Source: Trichosphaerium sp. ATCC 40318 | Taxonomy: Eukaryota > Protista > Tubulinea | Assembly: GCA_038496445.1 (NCBI GenBank) | Contig: JALMLS010000491.1 | Location: 48,970 to 112,969, forward strand | Direction: 5' to 3' | DNA: 64,000 nt | Shown: positions 13,648 to 40,369 of the stretch, piece by piece | How the letters are laid out: each line of letters begins with the position of its first letter | Numbering within the stretch: the stretch's first letter is position 1 | Translations under genes and position numbers: made by a program | Notes under the pieces: generated by a model | Told to the model about the DNA's origin: nothing | Databases searched by the model: none | What the model saw: only the letters and a program-made list of their open reading frames with translations

Positions 13648-14598
13648 TGTTTGTTTGTTTGTTTGTTTGTTTGTTTATTGTTTTTTGTCTGGGGTTGACT
13701 TTCAGGGCGCAGATAAGGCCGCTATAGAAAAGACGCCACACCACCCGACATGGCTACTAGAGCCTATAATGTAAAAAAATAAAATAAGAATTAAAATAAT
13801 GGAGGAAAAGTTACAGAAAACCCCCCTTGCAGGAAAAGCCCCCTGGCATAAAAACCTGCGACCCCGTCTACATAGTCTGTTCCGCTCCCTTATCTACCAA
13901 TACCCTTTCATCCCGACTCACTCGTCCAAGCGTTCACTCCTCTTTCTCTTGACCTTCTTCCATCTACCTTTACCAACTGTTCTACCTCGCTCACTCCTTA
14001 TTTTTGCCTCCGTTTTACATCTCGCTTTGTATTTTCGATACAATAGCGTAATGTATGCCACGTTGATCATACTTGTGGCCATCTCCGCTTTAGCCTTGGA
14101 CAATCCAAGTATGCCTTTCACCTTCTCACACATTCCTTTAATCACCCACCCCATGGACGTGCGATACGAGAAATTATCCTTACTATCCGGTTTCACACCC
14201 CATATCTCCGCCAATTCCGTGGCTCTTTGTATGTTTGACATTCTGCCATGTAGTAATACCTCTTGTCTTACACGCCATTCTCTAATCTTCTCCTCACTCA
14301 TCCCCAGCAAGGCCACTTCACGCATTTCATTTGTGACCCTCCAAGTTTTGACCATATCCGGTAGCACAAATGTGTTACCTGCCGTCACTCCCACTATAAT
14401 TGACCTGTTAGCATCCGATTCATCCCACGATAACTTAGGATGCGGCCATTGAGTCACATGTTGAAGTATGCGGGAGACCTGCGTTACAAAGTGAAACTCA
14501 AAATCAAAGTCACAATTGACACAGCTAGCAAAATGGTGAAAATTTTCCGTAGCTTCAACGCCAACTGCCAAGCAAGCTCCACAAAGTGCATGCGGGTA
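13648..14598 (-). mobile_element. 5'-truncated non-LTR retrotransposon (LINE) copy
   Basis: 12-bp TSD GTAAAACGAGTT at 13636-13647 and 14599-14610; (AAAC)n 3' tail at ~13648-13677; ORF remnant begins with a CCHC knuckle (CGAC...ENFHHFASC) and ends at 13918; GC-richer than the flanks. Confidence 0.9.
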
Positions 14599-25405: not shown

Positions 25406-26049
25406 TAGTAAGATGTATTGTTACTTTCAATAAAAAGTATATTAGTTAGTATTTGTTACAACTCGCTGCTTCTCACATGCCTGCTTCACTAAAGTAACCG
25501 TCATGTGAAGTTACCAGCCTTTCAATTTTGTAGGCATTGTGTGGGATAACCTCTCACAATAATACTGAGATAATTCACCACACCGACTTTATTTAACACT
25601 GGGCATTTGCTACTTATTTCCACCAATGAAATGTGGGAATAAGTGCTCATTGTATATCATCAATGTACTTTGGTTTTTGTTGTTGTTTTTACCAAACAGA
25701 ATGTTCGAATATAGATTATTTCGAGCGTACTCTGATCTCAACAAATTGACTTTAGCAAAACGATTAACTATGGCAAGCAACAAAACAACCAAAACTACAC
25801 GAGTACTATAGTACAAGGGTGCGTTAGAGCCACTAGATATTGATTTCTTCCTCCTAATCGTGTGTATGTTGAAACGAATGAGTAGGTGTTAGGGAACGAA
25901 TGATCTAATGTGAGGGATCTGCTTACAAAATCGTAGTGCTTCATGATAACAAGCAGTAATTGGCCAAAACAAGATATTTGTAAGTGATATCACTACAGCA
26001 CGACTAAAACCAAGTTTATTGTGACAATCGTCTTACACAACGTCCTCTA

Positions 26050-28700
26050 TCAACAAACGCTGGTGCTGGAGGATTGAAATTAAAAGCAGATAAACCAAAG
26101 CTTACTGGAGCATCAATAGCCATCACAGTTACAGCATCCGTACTGATATCAACAGAGATATAACGTCCATCTAGGCATGATCCAATTAAAGTGCTTGTTG
26201 ATACTGATGTTAAACCTAGACAAGAAGCAACCTGTGAGTTACAGGCAAATCAAGCTTTTATGACTTACCTACGATAGCACAACCCTGTGTATCAATTGTG
26301 CGTTGTGATGCACATGATCCAGAAAGAAAACCAGGCAGTACTTCCAAAAAAGGAGAAGGAAGGTATAGAACACCATCTAGAGATGGCAGAAATACCGGTC
26401 CGAACCGGTTCCGGACCGAAACGCAAAGACCGGTCCGTAAACGGTCCAAACGGTCCGCTGTCAAAGGGAGTACCCTTGGAAAATCAGAAAAATAGCCGAA
26501 AAAGGAATTTTTGTCAAAGGGTACTCCCTTGGATTTTTATCGGTCCAAACGGTCCCTGTCACAAAATCTCAGAACCCTCCATCTATTGACCTACTCACTG
26601 TGTGCATGCACATAAGGTGGCTGTACACTTTTTGTGGCAGGTTTGAATATCACCACTTTTTTTTTTCATACCTAAAATAGTTTAGATACTATTATTTCGC
26701 GTAAGCAATGCACTTGATAAGTTGCTCTACGCGCACAAAGTGATAAAAAGATGTTTGGGTGAAAGTGTATGAAAGTATGTAACATCACGTGATTTTGTCC
26801 AAATGTCAAAATAACGTCACCACAGGCACATTTTGACTCAAAAAAAGTAGCGGTTAGGCCAGCGTGACCTTGTTTTACCGCGCTAAACTTAATTTTGTTA
26901 AAACGGGCTGATTGAGGGCTTTCAACCACTCTATGTGTAGCTCTCAATTTTAAGGCGTTTCAGGCTACTTTTATTCAAAATAAAGTGAGTGGTGGTTCAA
27001 AAAGAAGCCACTTACATTGTTATTCACTGAATGAATACTGCTCTTGTTCTAAATCACGGACCAGTTACGGACCGAAAACCGATATATTGAAACCGGACCG
27101 GTATCGGACCGGTATTTGCCACCTCTAACACCATCAACAATTTCTCCTGTTGATAAAAAAACAAAGTTAGAAAAAACAAAAACTAAAATAACTAAAGAAA
27201 AACACGTGCCACTTATCCCAACAGATGGTTCATCATTGCAAACGAAACTAAATTTACATTTTTCTAAATCAAATTCGTAAGCAAATGGTCCTGGAACCTC
27301 TGCGAATATTCGACCACTCTCTTTATCTATCATCAGCGCATCAATTCGAAGACTGCTCGTACATCTTTTGTCCTAAGAATGGAAAAAACTAAGAAATCTA
27401 TGGCTTTTAAAAGTATGCCATCGTACAATTTCACAAGTGTAAGGATTGATTGAAAATAGCTCTTGGTTCATATTAACATACAATACTCTATCGAATACAG
27501 TACTGTACTCCATTGCTGATGGCTGTGTCATCAATTCTGGGATATCACATGCTAATACTATGTTTTAGTGGATGTTTCATTTCAAATCAAAAAAATTCGT
27601 ACATTGTATAATCTCGTTTGTGTTTGAAAGTAGTCGATAGTCAAAGCCTGGCAATGGATGTTTTGATGTAATTAGAGTATCAATCACACCTCCTTGAGGA
27701 GCTCTTGTTGGAGGTGGCGTTGGCATGACTGGTGCAACAGGTGGTATTGTTGTTTCATCTGGAGGTGGCGGTGGTGGCGTTGCCTCATAGAATATTGTAG
27801 TAATGGCGTTAGTTAGAGGTAATGATGTTGTAAGCACAGTCATTGTTGAGGTAGCAATGTCTAGACTAAAATAGCTACCAACAGGGGTAGAAGAGCCAAT
27901 AATTTGATTATCTGATACTGCGGTAATATCTAGGCAACAGATACTAAGATAAAAAACAACTAGTAAATGTTATGTACCAGCAAAAAAAGCTAGTAATGTT
28001 GAAGGATATTCCACGAATTGAGTGGCAATGCAAGATGAAGGGCCTGTCAAAGGTAAAATAGCCATTCTCACAAATCCTAGAACATATATTGTATCTCCAA
28101 TGATCTCAACTATGCAACAATTGAATTAGGAAAAAAAGAAAACGATAATCAACAAAAACTCACTGCCACTAGCAAAACCTCCAAGATTTGTCAAGTCTAC
28201 CCGACAAAAATGACAAAATGAGCAATCTGTTGGATCTATCTGTGCAATATCACCGTTCATAGTAATGCCATATAGTACTTGTGTCACCTTATCAAGAGCA
28301 ATGTGTTGAAAGTCAAAGGGCAAAGCACAAGAACTCTACAAAAGTAAAAAAAAAAACTTGTTTGTTACAATCGGGGTGTGTACCTTTACTCCACACGTGC
28401 GTGGATCTACCTCAAGCAAGCTGAGTAGCTCTTTTATAAATATTGTACGTGTTGAAGGAGAATAAGACATAGATACTGGCGACTGAGTAAAGGTTGGGAT
28501 GCCACAGGCTAAACAAAGAGATTAGATTAAGAGAGTTTCGAGAAATCGTCTGTACTGCGTAGAACATCTGTTGGATCAGCTATTGACCTTATTTCAAACC
28601 CCGCAGTCCGACCGTTGATGACATACGCGTTGATCTCTTGGCAGAGTGTATATGGCAAAAATAAGGATAGAACGAGGAATAAGAAAGGTGTTGCGTTCAT
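26050..28700 (-). CDS. Secreted Cys-containing beta-rich (propeller-like) protein with a Pro/Thr linker; one exon interrupted by a hAT element
   Basis: Signal peptide MNATPFLFLVLSLFLPYTLC; short exons with GT-AG boundaries; ATPPPPPPDETTIPP linker; GEIVDGV|LYLPSPF becomes continuous once the element and one TSD are removed; ends PSTSVC*. Confidence 0.65.
26378..27127. mobile_element. Non-autonomous hAT-type DNA transposon (750 bp)
   Basis: 8-bp TSD ACACCATC at 26370-26377 and 27128-27135; TIRs TAGAGATGGCAGAAATACCGGTCCGA / TAGAGGTGGCAAATACCGGTCCGA; subterminal CGGTCC/GGACCG repeats; no transposase. Confidence 0.92.
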
Positions 28701-28919
28701 TGCGTTTGCTTGCGTAGGCCTTCATTTTTGACCATTCTGTTAAATACAAATCTCTAGATGTCACGTGATTTATTTTGACACTGAGAAACAGCTCGCAAAT
28801 TAACCAAGATCTCTAACAATCACGTGAATTGTTTTAACGAAGTGCATCCACTGCCTAAACAAATGTGAGAATGTCCTACATTAATCAATCATATGTACTA
28901 AATCTTCTGTTTTGGCAGC

Positions 28920-35403: not shown

Positions 35404-35457
35404 GTTCTCATGTTAAATGTCGATAAATTGACAAAAAATGTCAACTTTTTGGAAAAT

Positions 35458-37420
35458 CAGGTCTGAAAATTATCATGGTATTATACCGTATTTTATGGTA
35501 TAATCACCTTTTATGGTACAAGCTCAGTATAATTCATAATTATACCATATAATTATACCATAAAATATGGTATAATACCATGTTTTTTGGACAAATGGTA
35601 TAACAGCCATTATACCATGTTTATACCATATTTCAATTTATAGAATATAATTATACCATAAAACATGGTACTATACCATGGTATTATACCACATTTTACA
35701 GTACATTATACCATGCATTATACCATATAATTATATCATAAAACATGGTACTATACTATGGTATTATACTGCATTTTAAAGTATATTATACCATGCATTA
35801 TACCATATAATTATACCATAAAACACAGTATTATACCATGGTATTATATTGTATTTTAAAGTATAGTATACCGTGCATTATACCATATAATTATACCATA
35901 AAATGTGGTATTATACCGTGGTATTATACCGTATAAGTATAAGTTAGTCAAAGCTCACTTGGTTTACACTTGATTTAATAGCCTTTGGCCCTACGCAAAC
36001 GCCATACCACACAATGCTTTGACAGTAGCCGTTATTGAACATAATTGGCATATAAATGTGTGAAAAACAGTTTTAAGAGAGAAATCTGGTAACGTGCCCC
36101 AATTGCGGGCGTTTTAGGGATAAATTGGCCAATTTTCTCCGATTGACGGTATTTGAGGAAGAAACCACTCCATGTACCCCATGTTAGAACGCTACAGTGG
36201 TAGACACACCAAAAACGCGTTTAGTGCTCGAAAAATGCCCATTTGCAAAAAACCTCCAATTGGAGGTTTTTTTCCCCGGCTCTCATTTTTTTCTCCCCTC
36301 CATAGGCATTTTTACACTCAATCAATGCCATACAGCCTCATTTACCAAATCAGGAGCAAAATTATTTATTTTTTTTTGACATTTTTGATATACACTCCAA
36401 TGCATGTTAAAACGCGTGAATAGTGCTATAAGGCCAAGTTGTTTCAGAGCCTACCCATTTTTTGAGTTTTTTGGTTTTTTTTGGATTTTTTTTGAATTTT
36501 TCCCTACTAAATGCCTGCATTTGCCAGAACAGATAGCATTTAGGCTTCACACCCATGTGTTGACCTTACGAGTGATATTGTAAACCAATTGGCTAAGTCA
36601 GAGCACAAAACTAAGTCTTGTCCAGTTTATCGCCCGCACAACACAAGGTACGCTAAAAGTAGTTGTTTTGAAGCTGCTTGCCATAGGTTTTAACCAAGCT
36701 AGATAGATGATAAAAAAAAAACCAAGATGTGTTAGCTAACAGGTACGATTCTGCTAGAACTTGTTTCTGATGAAGTTGGCAGTTATTTTCATTTCTTTGT
36801 TTTAGTCTTGGTTTGGCTCCACCGCACAGGTCATTTGTTACTCCCAGTGCCGCCACCACAACAAAACAGCAATTTTTGTACGACTATTTATTTTGTGCAT
36901 CAAGTCTTCACTAATTCTTCTTCTAGTTTTCATGCTATGTCCATTCGATGCACTTACAGCAAGTACAATATTTTTTTTGAAAGTTATTTGATGTGTCAAC
37001 TACCACAAAAGAGAATATGGACAAAACCAAAGGTCATGGATGTAAACAAAAAAATGTATTAATAAATGTGGTTTTATTATTAGAACAGTTTTTACATGGT
37101 ATAATACACCTGGTTTTGTGGTATAATCTACCAAGTTTTAAGGTATAATATACCAGACTTTGTGGTATTATACTGTGTTTTATACCATGTTTTATGGTAG
37201 AATTATACCATATATTGCATTTTTTCAGGTGAAAAAATATGGTATAAATTCGCACTTTCTACTGCATATTTGTGGTATAATTTGGCTGTTTTATGGTATA
37301 AATCCTTTGATTTATGGTATATTATACTGGAATTTGTGGTATAAAATTGGAATCAATGGTATAATTATACCACAAATCCATGGTATCTACCATAAAAACA
37401 GCTCGAAAATTTTAGACCTG
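35458..37420. mobile_element. Nested non-autonomous TIR element with subterminal TTATACCAT arrays
   Basis: Ends CAGGTCTGAAAATT...AATTTTAGACCTG, flanked by AT on both sides; dense TTATACCAT repeats at ~35470-35935 and mostly inverted ATGGTATAA repeats at ~37095-37395. Confidence 0.8.
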
Positions 37421-37991
37421 ATGTAGCGTTCTAGGTCTGTTTGAGTAATTTTATTGAGTGAGTGCTGGAGTACATAGTACATACAAAAATCAAACGTGCT
37501 TGCATGGGGTAGACAGAAAATAAACCTCCTTATTTTTTGTAAACATGCAACTGCCTATTAACGTTATTCAAGGCTAAAAACCGCATGTATACATTGAAAC
37601 AAAGCAATGTAGAATAAAGAAACAGGATTTTGAAGTTGTTGAAAGGTTCAATGAACCACTTCTTTTAAAACAGCTCAAAACACAATAAATAATATTCACT
37701 ATGCGTAGAAAAGCCATACACCACTTTAACTGTTTTTTTACTTTTTTTAATTGTAAGAAACCCACGCTGTTGCATTAGTAGTATACAACAATTTAATATA
37801 CTACTATACATTGAATGGGAACTTTAAAGGCTACTTTGAACAGGCTTGGGGCTTCAATGAACTATGAAGTACCAAACTGCTTTAAAACTCATGGATACTG
37901 TTTCTAGCGCGTAGAAATAGTGTCAGTGTGAGTATTGCCGAAAAAGGCAGTGAACTTAAAGCTCATTTCTTATTTTAGTTAAAACAAGTTT

Positions 37992-40153
37992 ATGGAGGAA
38001 GCCACACCTCCACAATACAATTGTGCAGCTGATGTTACACCACATCTATTCAATACACTCGGTGTATGGATTGGTGGTGAGCGACTAGTACTTTACACCA
38101 ACCATAAAAAAGAATTTGCTTACCAATGGCACGTTGATCAGAAACCTAAGCTCAATGCAAAAGGAACAGCCATGATACACTATTTTAAATGTCCTAACCG
38201 CAATATGTGTAATGCCCGTGTGATATTACATCAAAAAAACTCTTTGAAAGGTCCTATAATCAAACTAGCTCAGAACAAAGGTGCAAACACTGGTTTCAAT
38301 ATTTTTTTCCAAAAAATAGTAATTTTTATTTAGAACACAATGAGCATTGCAAACCTACTCCAGAGCATAAATTAAAGTTACAGTATGCTGTAGGAAAGAA
38401 AATTCAAAAAGACCTTCGGCGCGGCATTGCACCAAGCACAGTGGTAAGCTTGTGTTCTCCCATATACCAACACTAACAACTTCATAGATGAAGACTTTAT
38501 TAAATGATCCAACAAAAAATATTCTAAACACTTTTGAAGTACCTAGTGGCCATGCCATGGCGTCACAAGTGCGTAAAGCTCGCAATTTGGAACGATTGCA
38601 CCCTGATGTACTAAAACAGCACAAACTCCTACTAATCCGCCATAGTTATTCATAAACATACATCTACAGTATCCTAAAGAGATTAAAATTCTAATTGCGA
38701 AAGAATGTGTTATTTCTTTTGTAAATCTTAGAGTGCTCTCTATAATCAAGAAGTTGAACACTAAAACACTCTTCCTTGATGCCATTCACAAGGTGTCAGA
38801 TACTGGCGCCAATGTACTGTTTTTTCGGTTAAATCTCTTCCCTCCATAACTCACTTACCCTTAGGCAATGTTGTATTGGGTCAGAGTAGAATCAGAAAAG
38901 CGTACAAAGGGAGTCAACCTTGGTTGGGCAATCACAGAAGGAAAAAACTTTGATGAGTATGTTTTCGCGTTCCGCCATATTAAAGACACCTTTGGGATGT
39001 TTTTTGAGCGTATTATGGCAGATTGTGAGCTCAATATAAGAAAGGGTATTTGGAAAAAAAAAACCCTTTTTTTTTATTTACACTTTTTTTAGCTGCACGA
39101 AAAGTATGGCCAGAGCAATTTGATGTTCACCATTGTCGCTTCCATGTGGCGGACGCATTTCGCAAAAAGCGCATTGAGCACGGGCTGGGTGGCAAGGTCA
39201 ATGATGGGGAGCGTTTGTGGTGTGAGCACATTATTGATAAGCTATTTTCAGCAATTACGAAAGAAGAATTTGATGAAAAATGGAAAACCTTTTATGAGGT
39301 ACAAGTGCCTTTTTGAATACTCATAACTTCAAATAGGACGGCCAATACCTCAGTGATAAAGTTAAAAAACATTTAAAGTACTTAGACAAACATTACATGA
39401 AGCCAGCATCAACAAACAATTGGTACAGTTCTTCTCTTTAGGTTTATTTACTAAATTTTTTACAAGGTGGCCACCAAGTACATGGGCTCCATATGCGTAT
39501 TTGAACAATGATGAAGCTAACTCTCACCGTACCAATAATACTAGTGAAGGAAATAATCGAGTAGTTCAAGAAGCATTGAAGTGGGAGGGTGCTAAAAAAG
39601 GAACATCAGAAAAAGTTGTTAAGGCTTTGGTTAGCTATTCTCATCTTTCCAAAGATGATGCTGTACGGTTGTTAAAAGGTGTTGGGGGAGTAAGAACTCC
39701 TAGAACCGCTAATAGACATCAAAAAGTTGTGCAAACAAAGGCACTTGCTAAGAAAAGTAAGTGCGAGTGTTTAGTTTTTTCATTTAATTATTCACAGGAA
39801 AAAACAACTCACCGAAAATAGCACACAAACTTATTAAGTTGAAGGAAGTACGAATGGTTCCATTAGCACTTTCTAAAATAATCTTTTATTAGGCTGAAGA
39901 AAAGAGGGCAAGGCAAGCTAAAAAAAAAGAAGCACATGCTAACAAAAAAGAACATGTGCCTACCAAACGCAAGAAACGCACAATAACTGTCAAAAAACGT
40001 CGTTTAGAGCCATCACCAAGAGCTGGAAAGCGCCAAAAAGTAGTTTCCAAGATTTCAAGCTCTGAACAAGATGAAATCATAAAGCAGTATGAAAAACGCT
40101 TGAAAGTAACTTCATTAAAGAGGACAACTCGCAAAAACTATGAAGAAAAATAA
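37992..40153 (+). CDS. MULE transposase with N-terminal WRKY/FLYWCH-type zinc finger (intron-containing)
   Basis: YFKC...C.A......HNEH finger; DDE triad LFLD(AIHK), IMAD(CE), RTNNTSE; CRFH (CxxH) motif; basic C-terminus. Start codon uncertain. Confidence 0.85.
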
Positions 40154-40369
40154 TAAAAAAACTTGTCGAGGATATTATTTTTTATTCTTTGAAGTAACCT
40201 AACATTCCTAAGTGACAAAATTTGTACTAGTAGCTTCTATTATCGTATATAATGTCCCTTTATACCGTATGCCGTGTAGGCACTTCATTAAATATGTCTC
40301 TGGTTATCAATGGGCCATCAAAAAAAAAGTTGACATTTTTGGTCAATTTATCGACATTCCCCAGCAGAC

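Follow-up and report, generated by a model that had tools for sequence, protein, structure and literature searches.

Exon 8 of a protein-coding gene of the amoeba Trichosphaerium sp. ATCC 40318 is split by a 750-bp element which, judged from its ends and repeats, is a non-autonomous, MITE-like DNA transposon of hAT-like type. A transposase cut the target GATGGTGT with an 8-bp stagger, and a sister copy of the gene keeps the intact site. As the evidence stands, this is an ordinary young transposon insertion, which probably disrupts exon 8 of one of the two sister copies and truncates the encoded protein. An earlier, sequence-only reading of the window (the whole 64,000-nt stretch of DNA that was analysed) had suggested that the element could be spliced out in frame and that it represents ongoing, Introner-like intron gain.

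The inserted DNA amounts to 758 nt, consisting of the element and one 8-bp duplication, and the element is oriented in the sense of the gene. On the minus strand, the upstream junction leads from the exon (...GAAATTGTT) through GATGGTGT into the element start TAGAGGTGGCAAATACCGGTCCG, and the downstream junction leads from the element end CGGACCGGTATTTCTGCCATCTCTA through the second GATGGTGT into TCTATACC.... The exon text reads ...GGAGAAATTGTT before the upstream GATGGTGT and TCTATACCTTCC... after the downstream one. A repeat finder returned a 9-nt direct repeat at 26369-26377 and 27127-27135, with a spacing of 758 nt, as well as inverted arms close to both element ends. The termini are TAGAGGTGGCA...TGCCATCTCTA; the terminal inverted repeats (TIRs) TAGAGGTGGCA and TAGAGATGGCA match at 10 of 11 positions and are identical across all copies of the element. 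Both ends carry short subterminal repeats of the transposase-binding type: within 71 nt of the element start, GGTCCG is found four times, and within 80 nt of its end, the complement is found three times, as compared to an expectation of 0.09. The TIRs of hAT transposons begin with 5'-YARNG, and the TIR of the element fits this start. Given the 8-bp duplication, the TAGAG end and the subterminal repeats, we assigned the element to the hAT-like non-autonomous transposons. Its internal ORFs (91 and 100 aa) had no Pfam match. The coordinates, duplications, TIR ends and exonic position given in the sequence-only reading are all correct, and its call of a hAT-type MITE is borne out by the 8-bp duplication, the TIRs, the subterminal repeats and the multicopy family. 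The features are collected in Table 1.

Table 1. The insertion and its host gene, in window positions
Feature	Position	Strand	Basis
Host gene with nine exons, eight introns (45-66 nt each) and a signal-peptide-like start	26016-28700	-	Paralogue-guided reading, phase check
Exon 8; 120 nt without the insertion, split by the element	26269-27146	-	Paralogues; uninterrupted on C206
Non-autonomous hAT-like element, MITE-like, without transposase, 750 bp	26378-27127	-	Identical termini in 13 full-length copies
Upstream target-site duplication GATGGTGT; bears the proposed donor G/GT at 27131-27130	27128-27135	-	Repeat finder (D13)
Downstream target-site duplication GATGGTGT; supplies, with its first base, the final G of the proposed acceptor CTCTAG	26370-26377	-	Sequence
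5' terminal inverted repeat TAGAGGTGGCA	27117-27127	-	Copy comparison, terminus scan
3' terminal inverted repeat (reverse complement TAGAGATGGCA)	26378-26388	-	Copy comparison, terminus scan
5' subterminal repeats; GGTCCG four times, ACCGGT twice	27052-27113	-	0.09 copies expected by composition; repeat families D1, D6
3' subterminal repeats, in inverted orientation to those at the 5' end; three copies of CGGACC, one of GGTCCG and three of ACCGGT	26393-26457	-	Repeat finder
Hypothetical 755-nt intron; donor ATG/GTGTTAGA, acceptor TTCTGCCATCTCTAG/ATG	26377-27131	-	Arithmetic checked
First in-frame stop on read-through (unspliced); ...GEIVDGV RGGKYRSDTGPVSIYRFSVRNWSVI, then stop	27049-27051	-	ORF 27049-27333

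The exon model of the host gene was built by tblastn of each open frame against six paralogous loci, together with an exon-by-exon phase check. The coding sequence is 1509 nt long over nine exons, with the ATG at 28700, the stop codon at 26018-26016 and no internal stop. The nine exons close in phase, in agreement with the earlier remark that no other lesion is visible, and the element is the sole lesion of this copy. The paralogues conserve ...IVDGV and DGVLY... around the insertion site, which shows that exon 8 is real. Upstream of the host ATG, CACGTG is found twice within 130 nt (28821-28826 and 28762-28767), and the same hexamer is present inside the element (26787-26792) and in intron 7 (27202-27207).

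The host family has at least 44 matches in the genome, many of them clustered on one contig, C106. At least 12 host-family matches lie between about 74 and 166 kb on this contig (G000). The proteins of the family carry a recurring ...(I/V)DPxTC... motif, whose recurrence suggests repeated blades. No Pfam domain was detected in the host exons. An exhaustive HMMER search with exon 5 against 1.84 billion representative proteins returned only one remote metagenome relative, and a word-index protein search with exon 9 gave no match. By these sequence criteria, the host appears to be a member of a lineage-restricted, fast-expanding orphan family, with a product that is predicted to be secreted. The protein collections contained no transcript-derived protein of the host gene or its close paralogues; since the collections seem to lack the proteins of this organism altogether, this silence is uninformative about the expression of the host gene.

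The sequence-only reading had proposed a search for empty-site alleles, and a precise empty site was found on contig C206. This contig and the window are colinear for more than 50 kb, with the exception of one inverted block, and their identity is about 96% (93-98%). The corresponding position of C206 has the sequence ...GTTGATGGTGTTCTATACC..., in which GATGGTGT is present once and the element is lacking, and the context of the empty site, ...CAACAGGAGAAATTGTTGATGGTGTTCTATACCTTCC..., is exact to the base. Identity of the inserted copy to its nearest relatives in the family reaches 99.3%, as compared to a difference of about 3.5% between the sister gene regions. Together with the exact empty site, this difference indicates that the insertion is young and occurred after the split of the C206 and window sequences. 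C206 may be either an allelic haplotig or a segmental duplicate of recent origin. Some regions of the assembly are present in a single copy.

The coding differences between the sister copies comprise 11 synonymous and 8 non-synonymous changes (pN/pS 0.23), implying that the host gene remained under constraint until recently, for most of the period after the two copies diverged. The C206 copy has changes of its own, which were compared at window positions 28057-28059 and 27601-27603 (loci L032 and L038). A 2-bp deletion in exon 4, opposite window positions 28057-28058, turns TTTT into TT and breaks the MAILPLTGP frame conserved in the paralogues, the donor of intron 5 is changed from GT to GC, and 6 bp are deleted in frame from the proline-rich part of exon 5. 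The 2-bp deletion may be an assembly error, since it lies in a homopolymer and the published Trichosphaerium sp. draft, if it is the same assembly, was built from noisy long reads (PMC10521059). If the lesions are real, each sister copy bears its own disabling lesion, as would fit a dispensable member of a large family; equally, only the element-bearing copy would then have intact exons, leaving room for selection on splicing.

Both sister copies might accordingly be viewed as decaying pseudogenes, in which case splicing of the element would be irrelevant. The element in one copy, the 2-bp frameshift and donor change in the other, and the size of the host family (at least 44 genome matches) are consistent with this view, but the pN/pS of 0.23 reflects constraint over most of the time since the split, and the frameshift lies in a T run where an assembly error may be at work. 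The lack of transcript-derived proteins of the gene and its close paralogues in the protein collections could also be cited in its favour, but with the proteins of the organism seemingly missing from them, it says nothing about expression. We consider it highly improbable that both copies are pseudogenes.

To place the insertion among its relatives, the DNA search covered the assembly of the window itself (70.3 Mb, 642 contigs). The element family has 54 genome matches, including 13 full-length copies with 92-100% identity. The termini are identical in all 13, and 12 of the 13 are flanked by perfect 8-bp duplications of unrelated sequence. One insertion, with the target CGCTTAGA, occurs three times among the full-length copies. 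Further complete derivatives of 393-1083 bp, which keep both termini, have perfect 8-bp duplications in four out of four cases. With the triplicated insertion counted once, the full-length copies and derivatives occupy 15 distinct complete sites. The exact 23-25-nt termini occur 43 times in the assembly, as compared to none for a control pattern, and the terminal 11-mer 145 times, as compared to 46. These copies define an active hAT-like MITE family in the Trichosphaerium amoeba.

The hAT dimerisation domain PF05699 has 22 matches in the genome. The terminal repeat of the element was absent within 1.5 kb of all 10 loci inspected out of these 22 matches, and in a whole-genome scan the terminal 11-mer adjoined no PF05699 match among the matches listed. 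A pair of termini 4 kb apart on contig C460 was considered as a larger, autonomous element and rejected, as it is an inverted duplication. Several partial or full copies (L014, L015 and L054, at G000:C460:3812-7838, and L010, L012 and L013, on C22 and C233) lie within large inverted or repeated duplications, and C460 is palindromic around 5.8 kb. Given these copies, the palindrome and the triplicated insertion, the assembly therefore appears to hold duplicated or unmerged segments. The flank of copy L002 is repetitive, while that of copy L003 is single-copy in the assembly.

Two further insertions distinguish the window from C206. A MULE at about 35404-40369, which splits a MORN-repeat exon, is absent from C206; it is flanked by a 9-bp duplication, GGTACCAAG, and C206 keeps one copy of this target. 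A 948-bp repeat at 13648-14595 is likewise absent from C206. It starts with (GTTT)n, is flanked by the direct repeat GTAAAACGAGTT and has 99%-identical copies on contigs C81 and C11. This repeat is probably a young retroelement-type insertion in non-coding DNA, and no coding frame was found to span its site. Contigs C194 and C206 are thus sister sequences, set apart by three or more recent transposon insertions. From the two 'spliceable' insertions in the window, the sequence-only reading had concluded that such insertions are preferentially retained. This explanation is not needed: the hAT-like element and the MULE are both simply absent from C206, implying that they are young insertions not yet tested by selection, and the two cases are simply two of the three young insertions in the window.

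The splice arithmetic of the sequence-only reading is correct. Removal of the 755-nt intron from 27131 to 26377 leaves GTT GAT GAT GGT GTT, that is, three extra bases, and the protein would read VDDGVL instead of VDGVL. For a reference, we used 51 introns of the host gene and six of its paralogues (loci L033-L042), deduced from frame and homology alone. These introns are 44-162 nt long, with a median of 53. Their donor consensus, GTAYG, is unusual, with A in 75% at +3, C in 65% at +4 and G in 56% at +5. The acceptor is mostly TAG, and a yTnAy motif is present at -40 to -6 in 46 of the 51. As compared to the mean of 6.2 bits for the reference donors, the proposed donor ATG/GTGTTAGA scores 2.9 bits, which places it at the 14th percentile; among exonic decoy GTs, 37% equal or surpass GTGTTA. 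At the 39th percentile, the proposed acceptor TTCTGCCATCTCTAG is average. The final 60 nt of the element are 58% G+C and lack a yTnAy branch motif. The proposed intron is 14 times as long as the host-family median and far exceeds the maximum of 162 nt. Moreover, sites inside the element outscore the proposed pair, for example AAT/GTAAGT at 27015 and TTTTAG/ at 26672.

In the predicted RNA fold, the element ends pair into a long stem (z = -12). Donor positions +4 to +6 lie within this stem, as does the entire 3' splice region. According to this model, the terminal stem could either hide the splice sites or bring them together.

How often such a configuration arises by chance was estimated by inserting the element in silico at every position of the host exons, in both orientations (2400 trials). 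A strict pattern, which requires the CTCTA+G acceptor together with a GT inside or directly before the duplication, in frame and without a stop, was obtained in 5.8% of the trials. A permissive pattern, which accepts every in-frame GT/AG pair up to 12 nt from the junctions, was obtained in 19.6%. A rate of 6-20% is therefore the baseline at which 'spliceable in frame' patterns arise by chance.

The sequence-only reading had also proposed a genome-wide search for copies that coincide with introns. For each copy, the element and one duplication were removed in silico, and the junction-spanning frames were given a log-likelihood score based on codon usage. This score, for which 16 long ORFs served as the training set, has a null mean of -0.09 and is positive for nine of nine host exons and for 87% of the paralogue exons. 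Only two of the 15 distinct sites, the window copy and L008, are clearly exonic by this score. With the marginal sites L022, L024 and L010, at most five are exonic, and the remaining 10 show no coding signal. Copy L008 (G000:C349:10326-11059) splits a single-exon gene with a 366-codon ORF and an LRR_6 match of 59 bits; the start of this gene is possibly F-box-like. Neither junction of L008 has a GT or AG within 12 nt and there is no splice path, but the insertion is retained all the same. Its nearest homologous copy, on C137 (flanks 97-98% identical), has an empty site. Site L024, if coding, would end in CTCTAA.

The published Trichosphaerium sp. draft has 70.87 Mb and 37.7% GC, its exons average 154 bp and its introns 75 bp, and about half of it is exon (PMC10521059). 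If that draft represents the genome analysed here, about half of the sites would be expected in exons, so that two to five exonic sites of 15 show no enrichment and perhaps a deficit. An association of the family with exons or introns was not seen, with two sites surely exonic and at most five. In Introner families, many copies are introns of unrelated genes; by the codon-usage score, the 15 distinct complete sites do not show this. Nor are there consistent splice sites at or near the element ends, as L008, L024 and the weak donor in the window illustrate. At the level of the family, the element does not qualify as an Introner.

Against this background, a nascent intron in the window, in which the spliceosome would remove the insertion at G/GTGTTA...CTCTAG/, add one Asp and leave the allele functional, seems rather unlikely. 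It predicts the junction GTTGATG/ATGGTGTTC and would amount to an intron gain observed at a stage when the sister copy still lacks it. The in-frame GT...AG is present as described, but 6-20% of exonic insertions would display such a pattern by chance. While the acceptor is of average strength, the donor is weak, no better than a third of exonic decoys, and the branch motif is absent. The host exons are intact apart from the element and the C206 sister copy may be broken, but the MITE family has no association with exons or introns. Pairing of the element ends could bring the splice sites together, but better donors and acceptors inside the element would compete, and the intron would have 14 times the family median length, with a mean intron of 75 bp in the draft, if it is the same genome (PMC10521059). 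Precedents are available, as splice sites derived from TIRs and target-site duplications are documented for Introners (PMC11282704, PMC9860276) and, according to titles cited in PMC3260210, the hAT element Ds1 is spliced from maize exons. Precise splicing in vivo at G/GTGTTA...CTCTAG/, by which a hAT MITE would have given rise to a new intron in an amoebozoan, is unlikely from the sequence signals; the long terminal hairpin would then have to substitute for the missing branch motif and for donor strength. Given the weak donor, the lack of a branch motif, the length of 755 nt, the chance rate and the lack of family association, the proposal of ongoing Introner-like intron gain is not supported.

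A leaky allele is also unlikely. Some transcripts may lose most of the element through stronger internal or flanking cryptic sites, giving products that are aberrant and mostly out of frame, as with many exonic transposon insertions in plants. Several donor- and acceptor-like sites inside the element do outscore the proposed pair, and the reference list of PMC3260210 points to a maize precedent, the alternative splicing of Ds1 from exon sequences. However, long-range pairing of splice sites would be disfavoured if the short introns of this organism are recognised as whole units, an assumption based on their small size, and the RNA may instead be targeted for degradation on account of its strong terminal hairpin.

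The disruptive insertion, the reading that we prefer, accounts for these observations as follows. A recent cut-and-paste event would have placed the non-autonomous hAT-like element into exon 8. The primary transcript would run into the element and reach a stop codon after 26 foreign codons, and about the last 99 of the 503 residues would be lost or the RNA degraded. The GT in the duplication and the TAG formed by the element end and the duplicated G would be a coincidence, of the kind expected in 6-20% of random exonic insertions. The young age of the copy, the existence of a sister locus and of dozens of paralogues, and the short time available to selection would explain why the copy persists; its persistence would not be owed to an adaptation of the element for splicing. 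The average quality of the acceptor and the lack of any other lesion in the host copy count against this reading. So do the lesions of the C206 copy, which, if real, favour splicing that rescues the element-bearing copy.

Compared to known systems, the element shares several features with the Introners of Micromonas, Aureococcus, dinoflagellates and other organisms, which are DNA-transposon-like and have TIRs and target-site duplications (PMC9860276, PMC12130899, PMC11282704). As in the Micromonas family IE1, the AG would be completed by the duplication (PMC11282704), and the host is probably a marine protist, fitting the reported aquatic bias. In contrast to Introner families, in which many copies are introns of unrelated genes with consistent splice sites, only one of 15 sites is so configured here. 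Furthermore, unlike Introners, the element supplies neither the donor nor the branch point, and its length exceeds the reported medians of Introner families (30-654 nt). The main text of two Introner surveys does not mention Amoebozoa. If the element were spliced, it would represent a dated intron gain with the pre-insertion sequence in hand, of a transposon-made kind not described in the host lineage, and would help to address the amount of splice signal required by a new intron.

The closest transposon counterpart is found in maize. Like Ac/Ds, the element has an 8-bp target-site duplication and 11-bp TIRs starting with YAGNG (C/TAGGGATGAAA in Ac/Ds, TAGAGGTGGCA here), and like Ds1 it has subterminal short repeats, a short non-coding body and an insertion in a coding exon, as in Adh1-Fm335 and the wx alleles (PMC3260210). 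Splicing of Ds1 from exon sequences is indicated by the titles of Dennis 1988 and Wessler 1991 in the reference list of PMC3260210; there, splicing was seen in RNA, whereas the present case is known from DNA. No autonomous partner with the terminal repeat of the element was found among the PF05699 loci inspected, unlike in maize Ac/Ds, and the host is an amoeba with introns of about 50 nt. By analogy, the element may work like a Ds1-type hAT insertion in an exon. With its young copy, exact empty site and premature stop, it corresponds in every feature noted to an ordinary MITE presence/absence polymorphism that creates a null or hypomorphic allele, and this is the reading adopted here.
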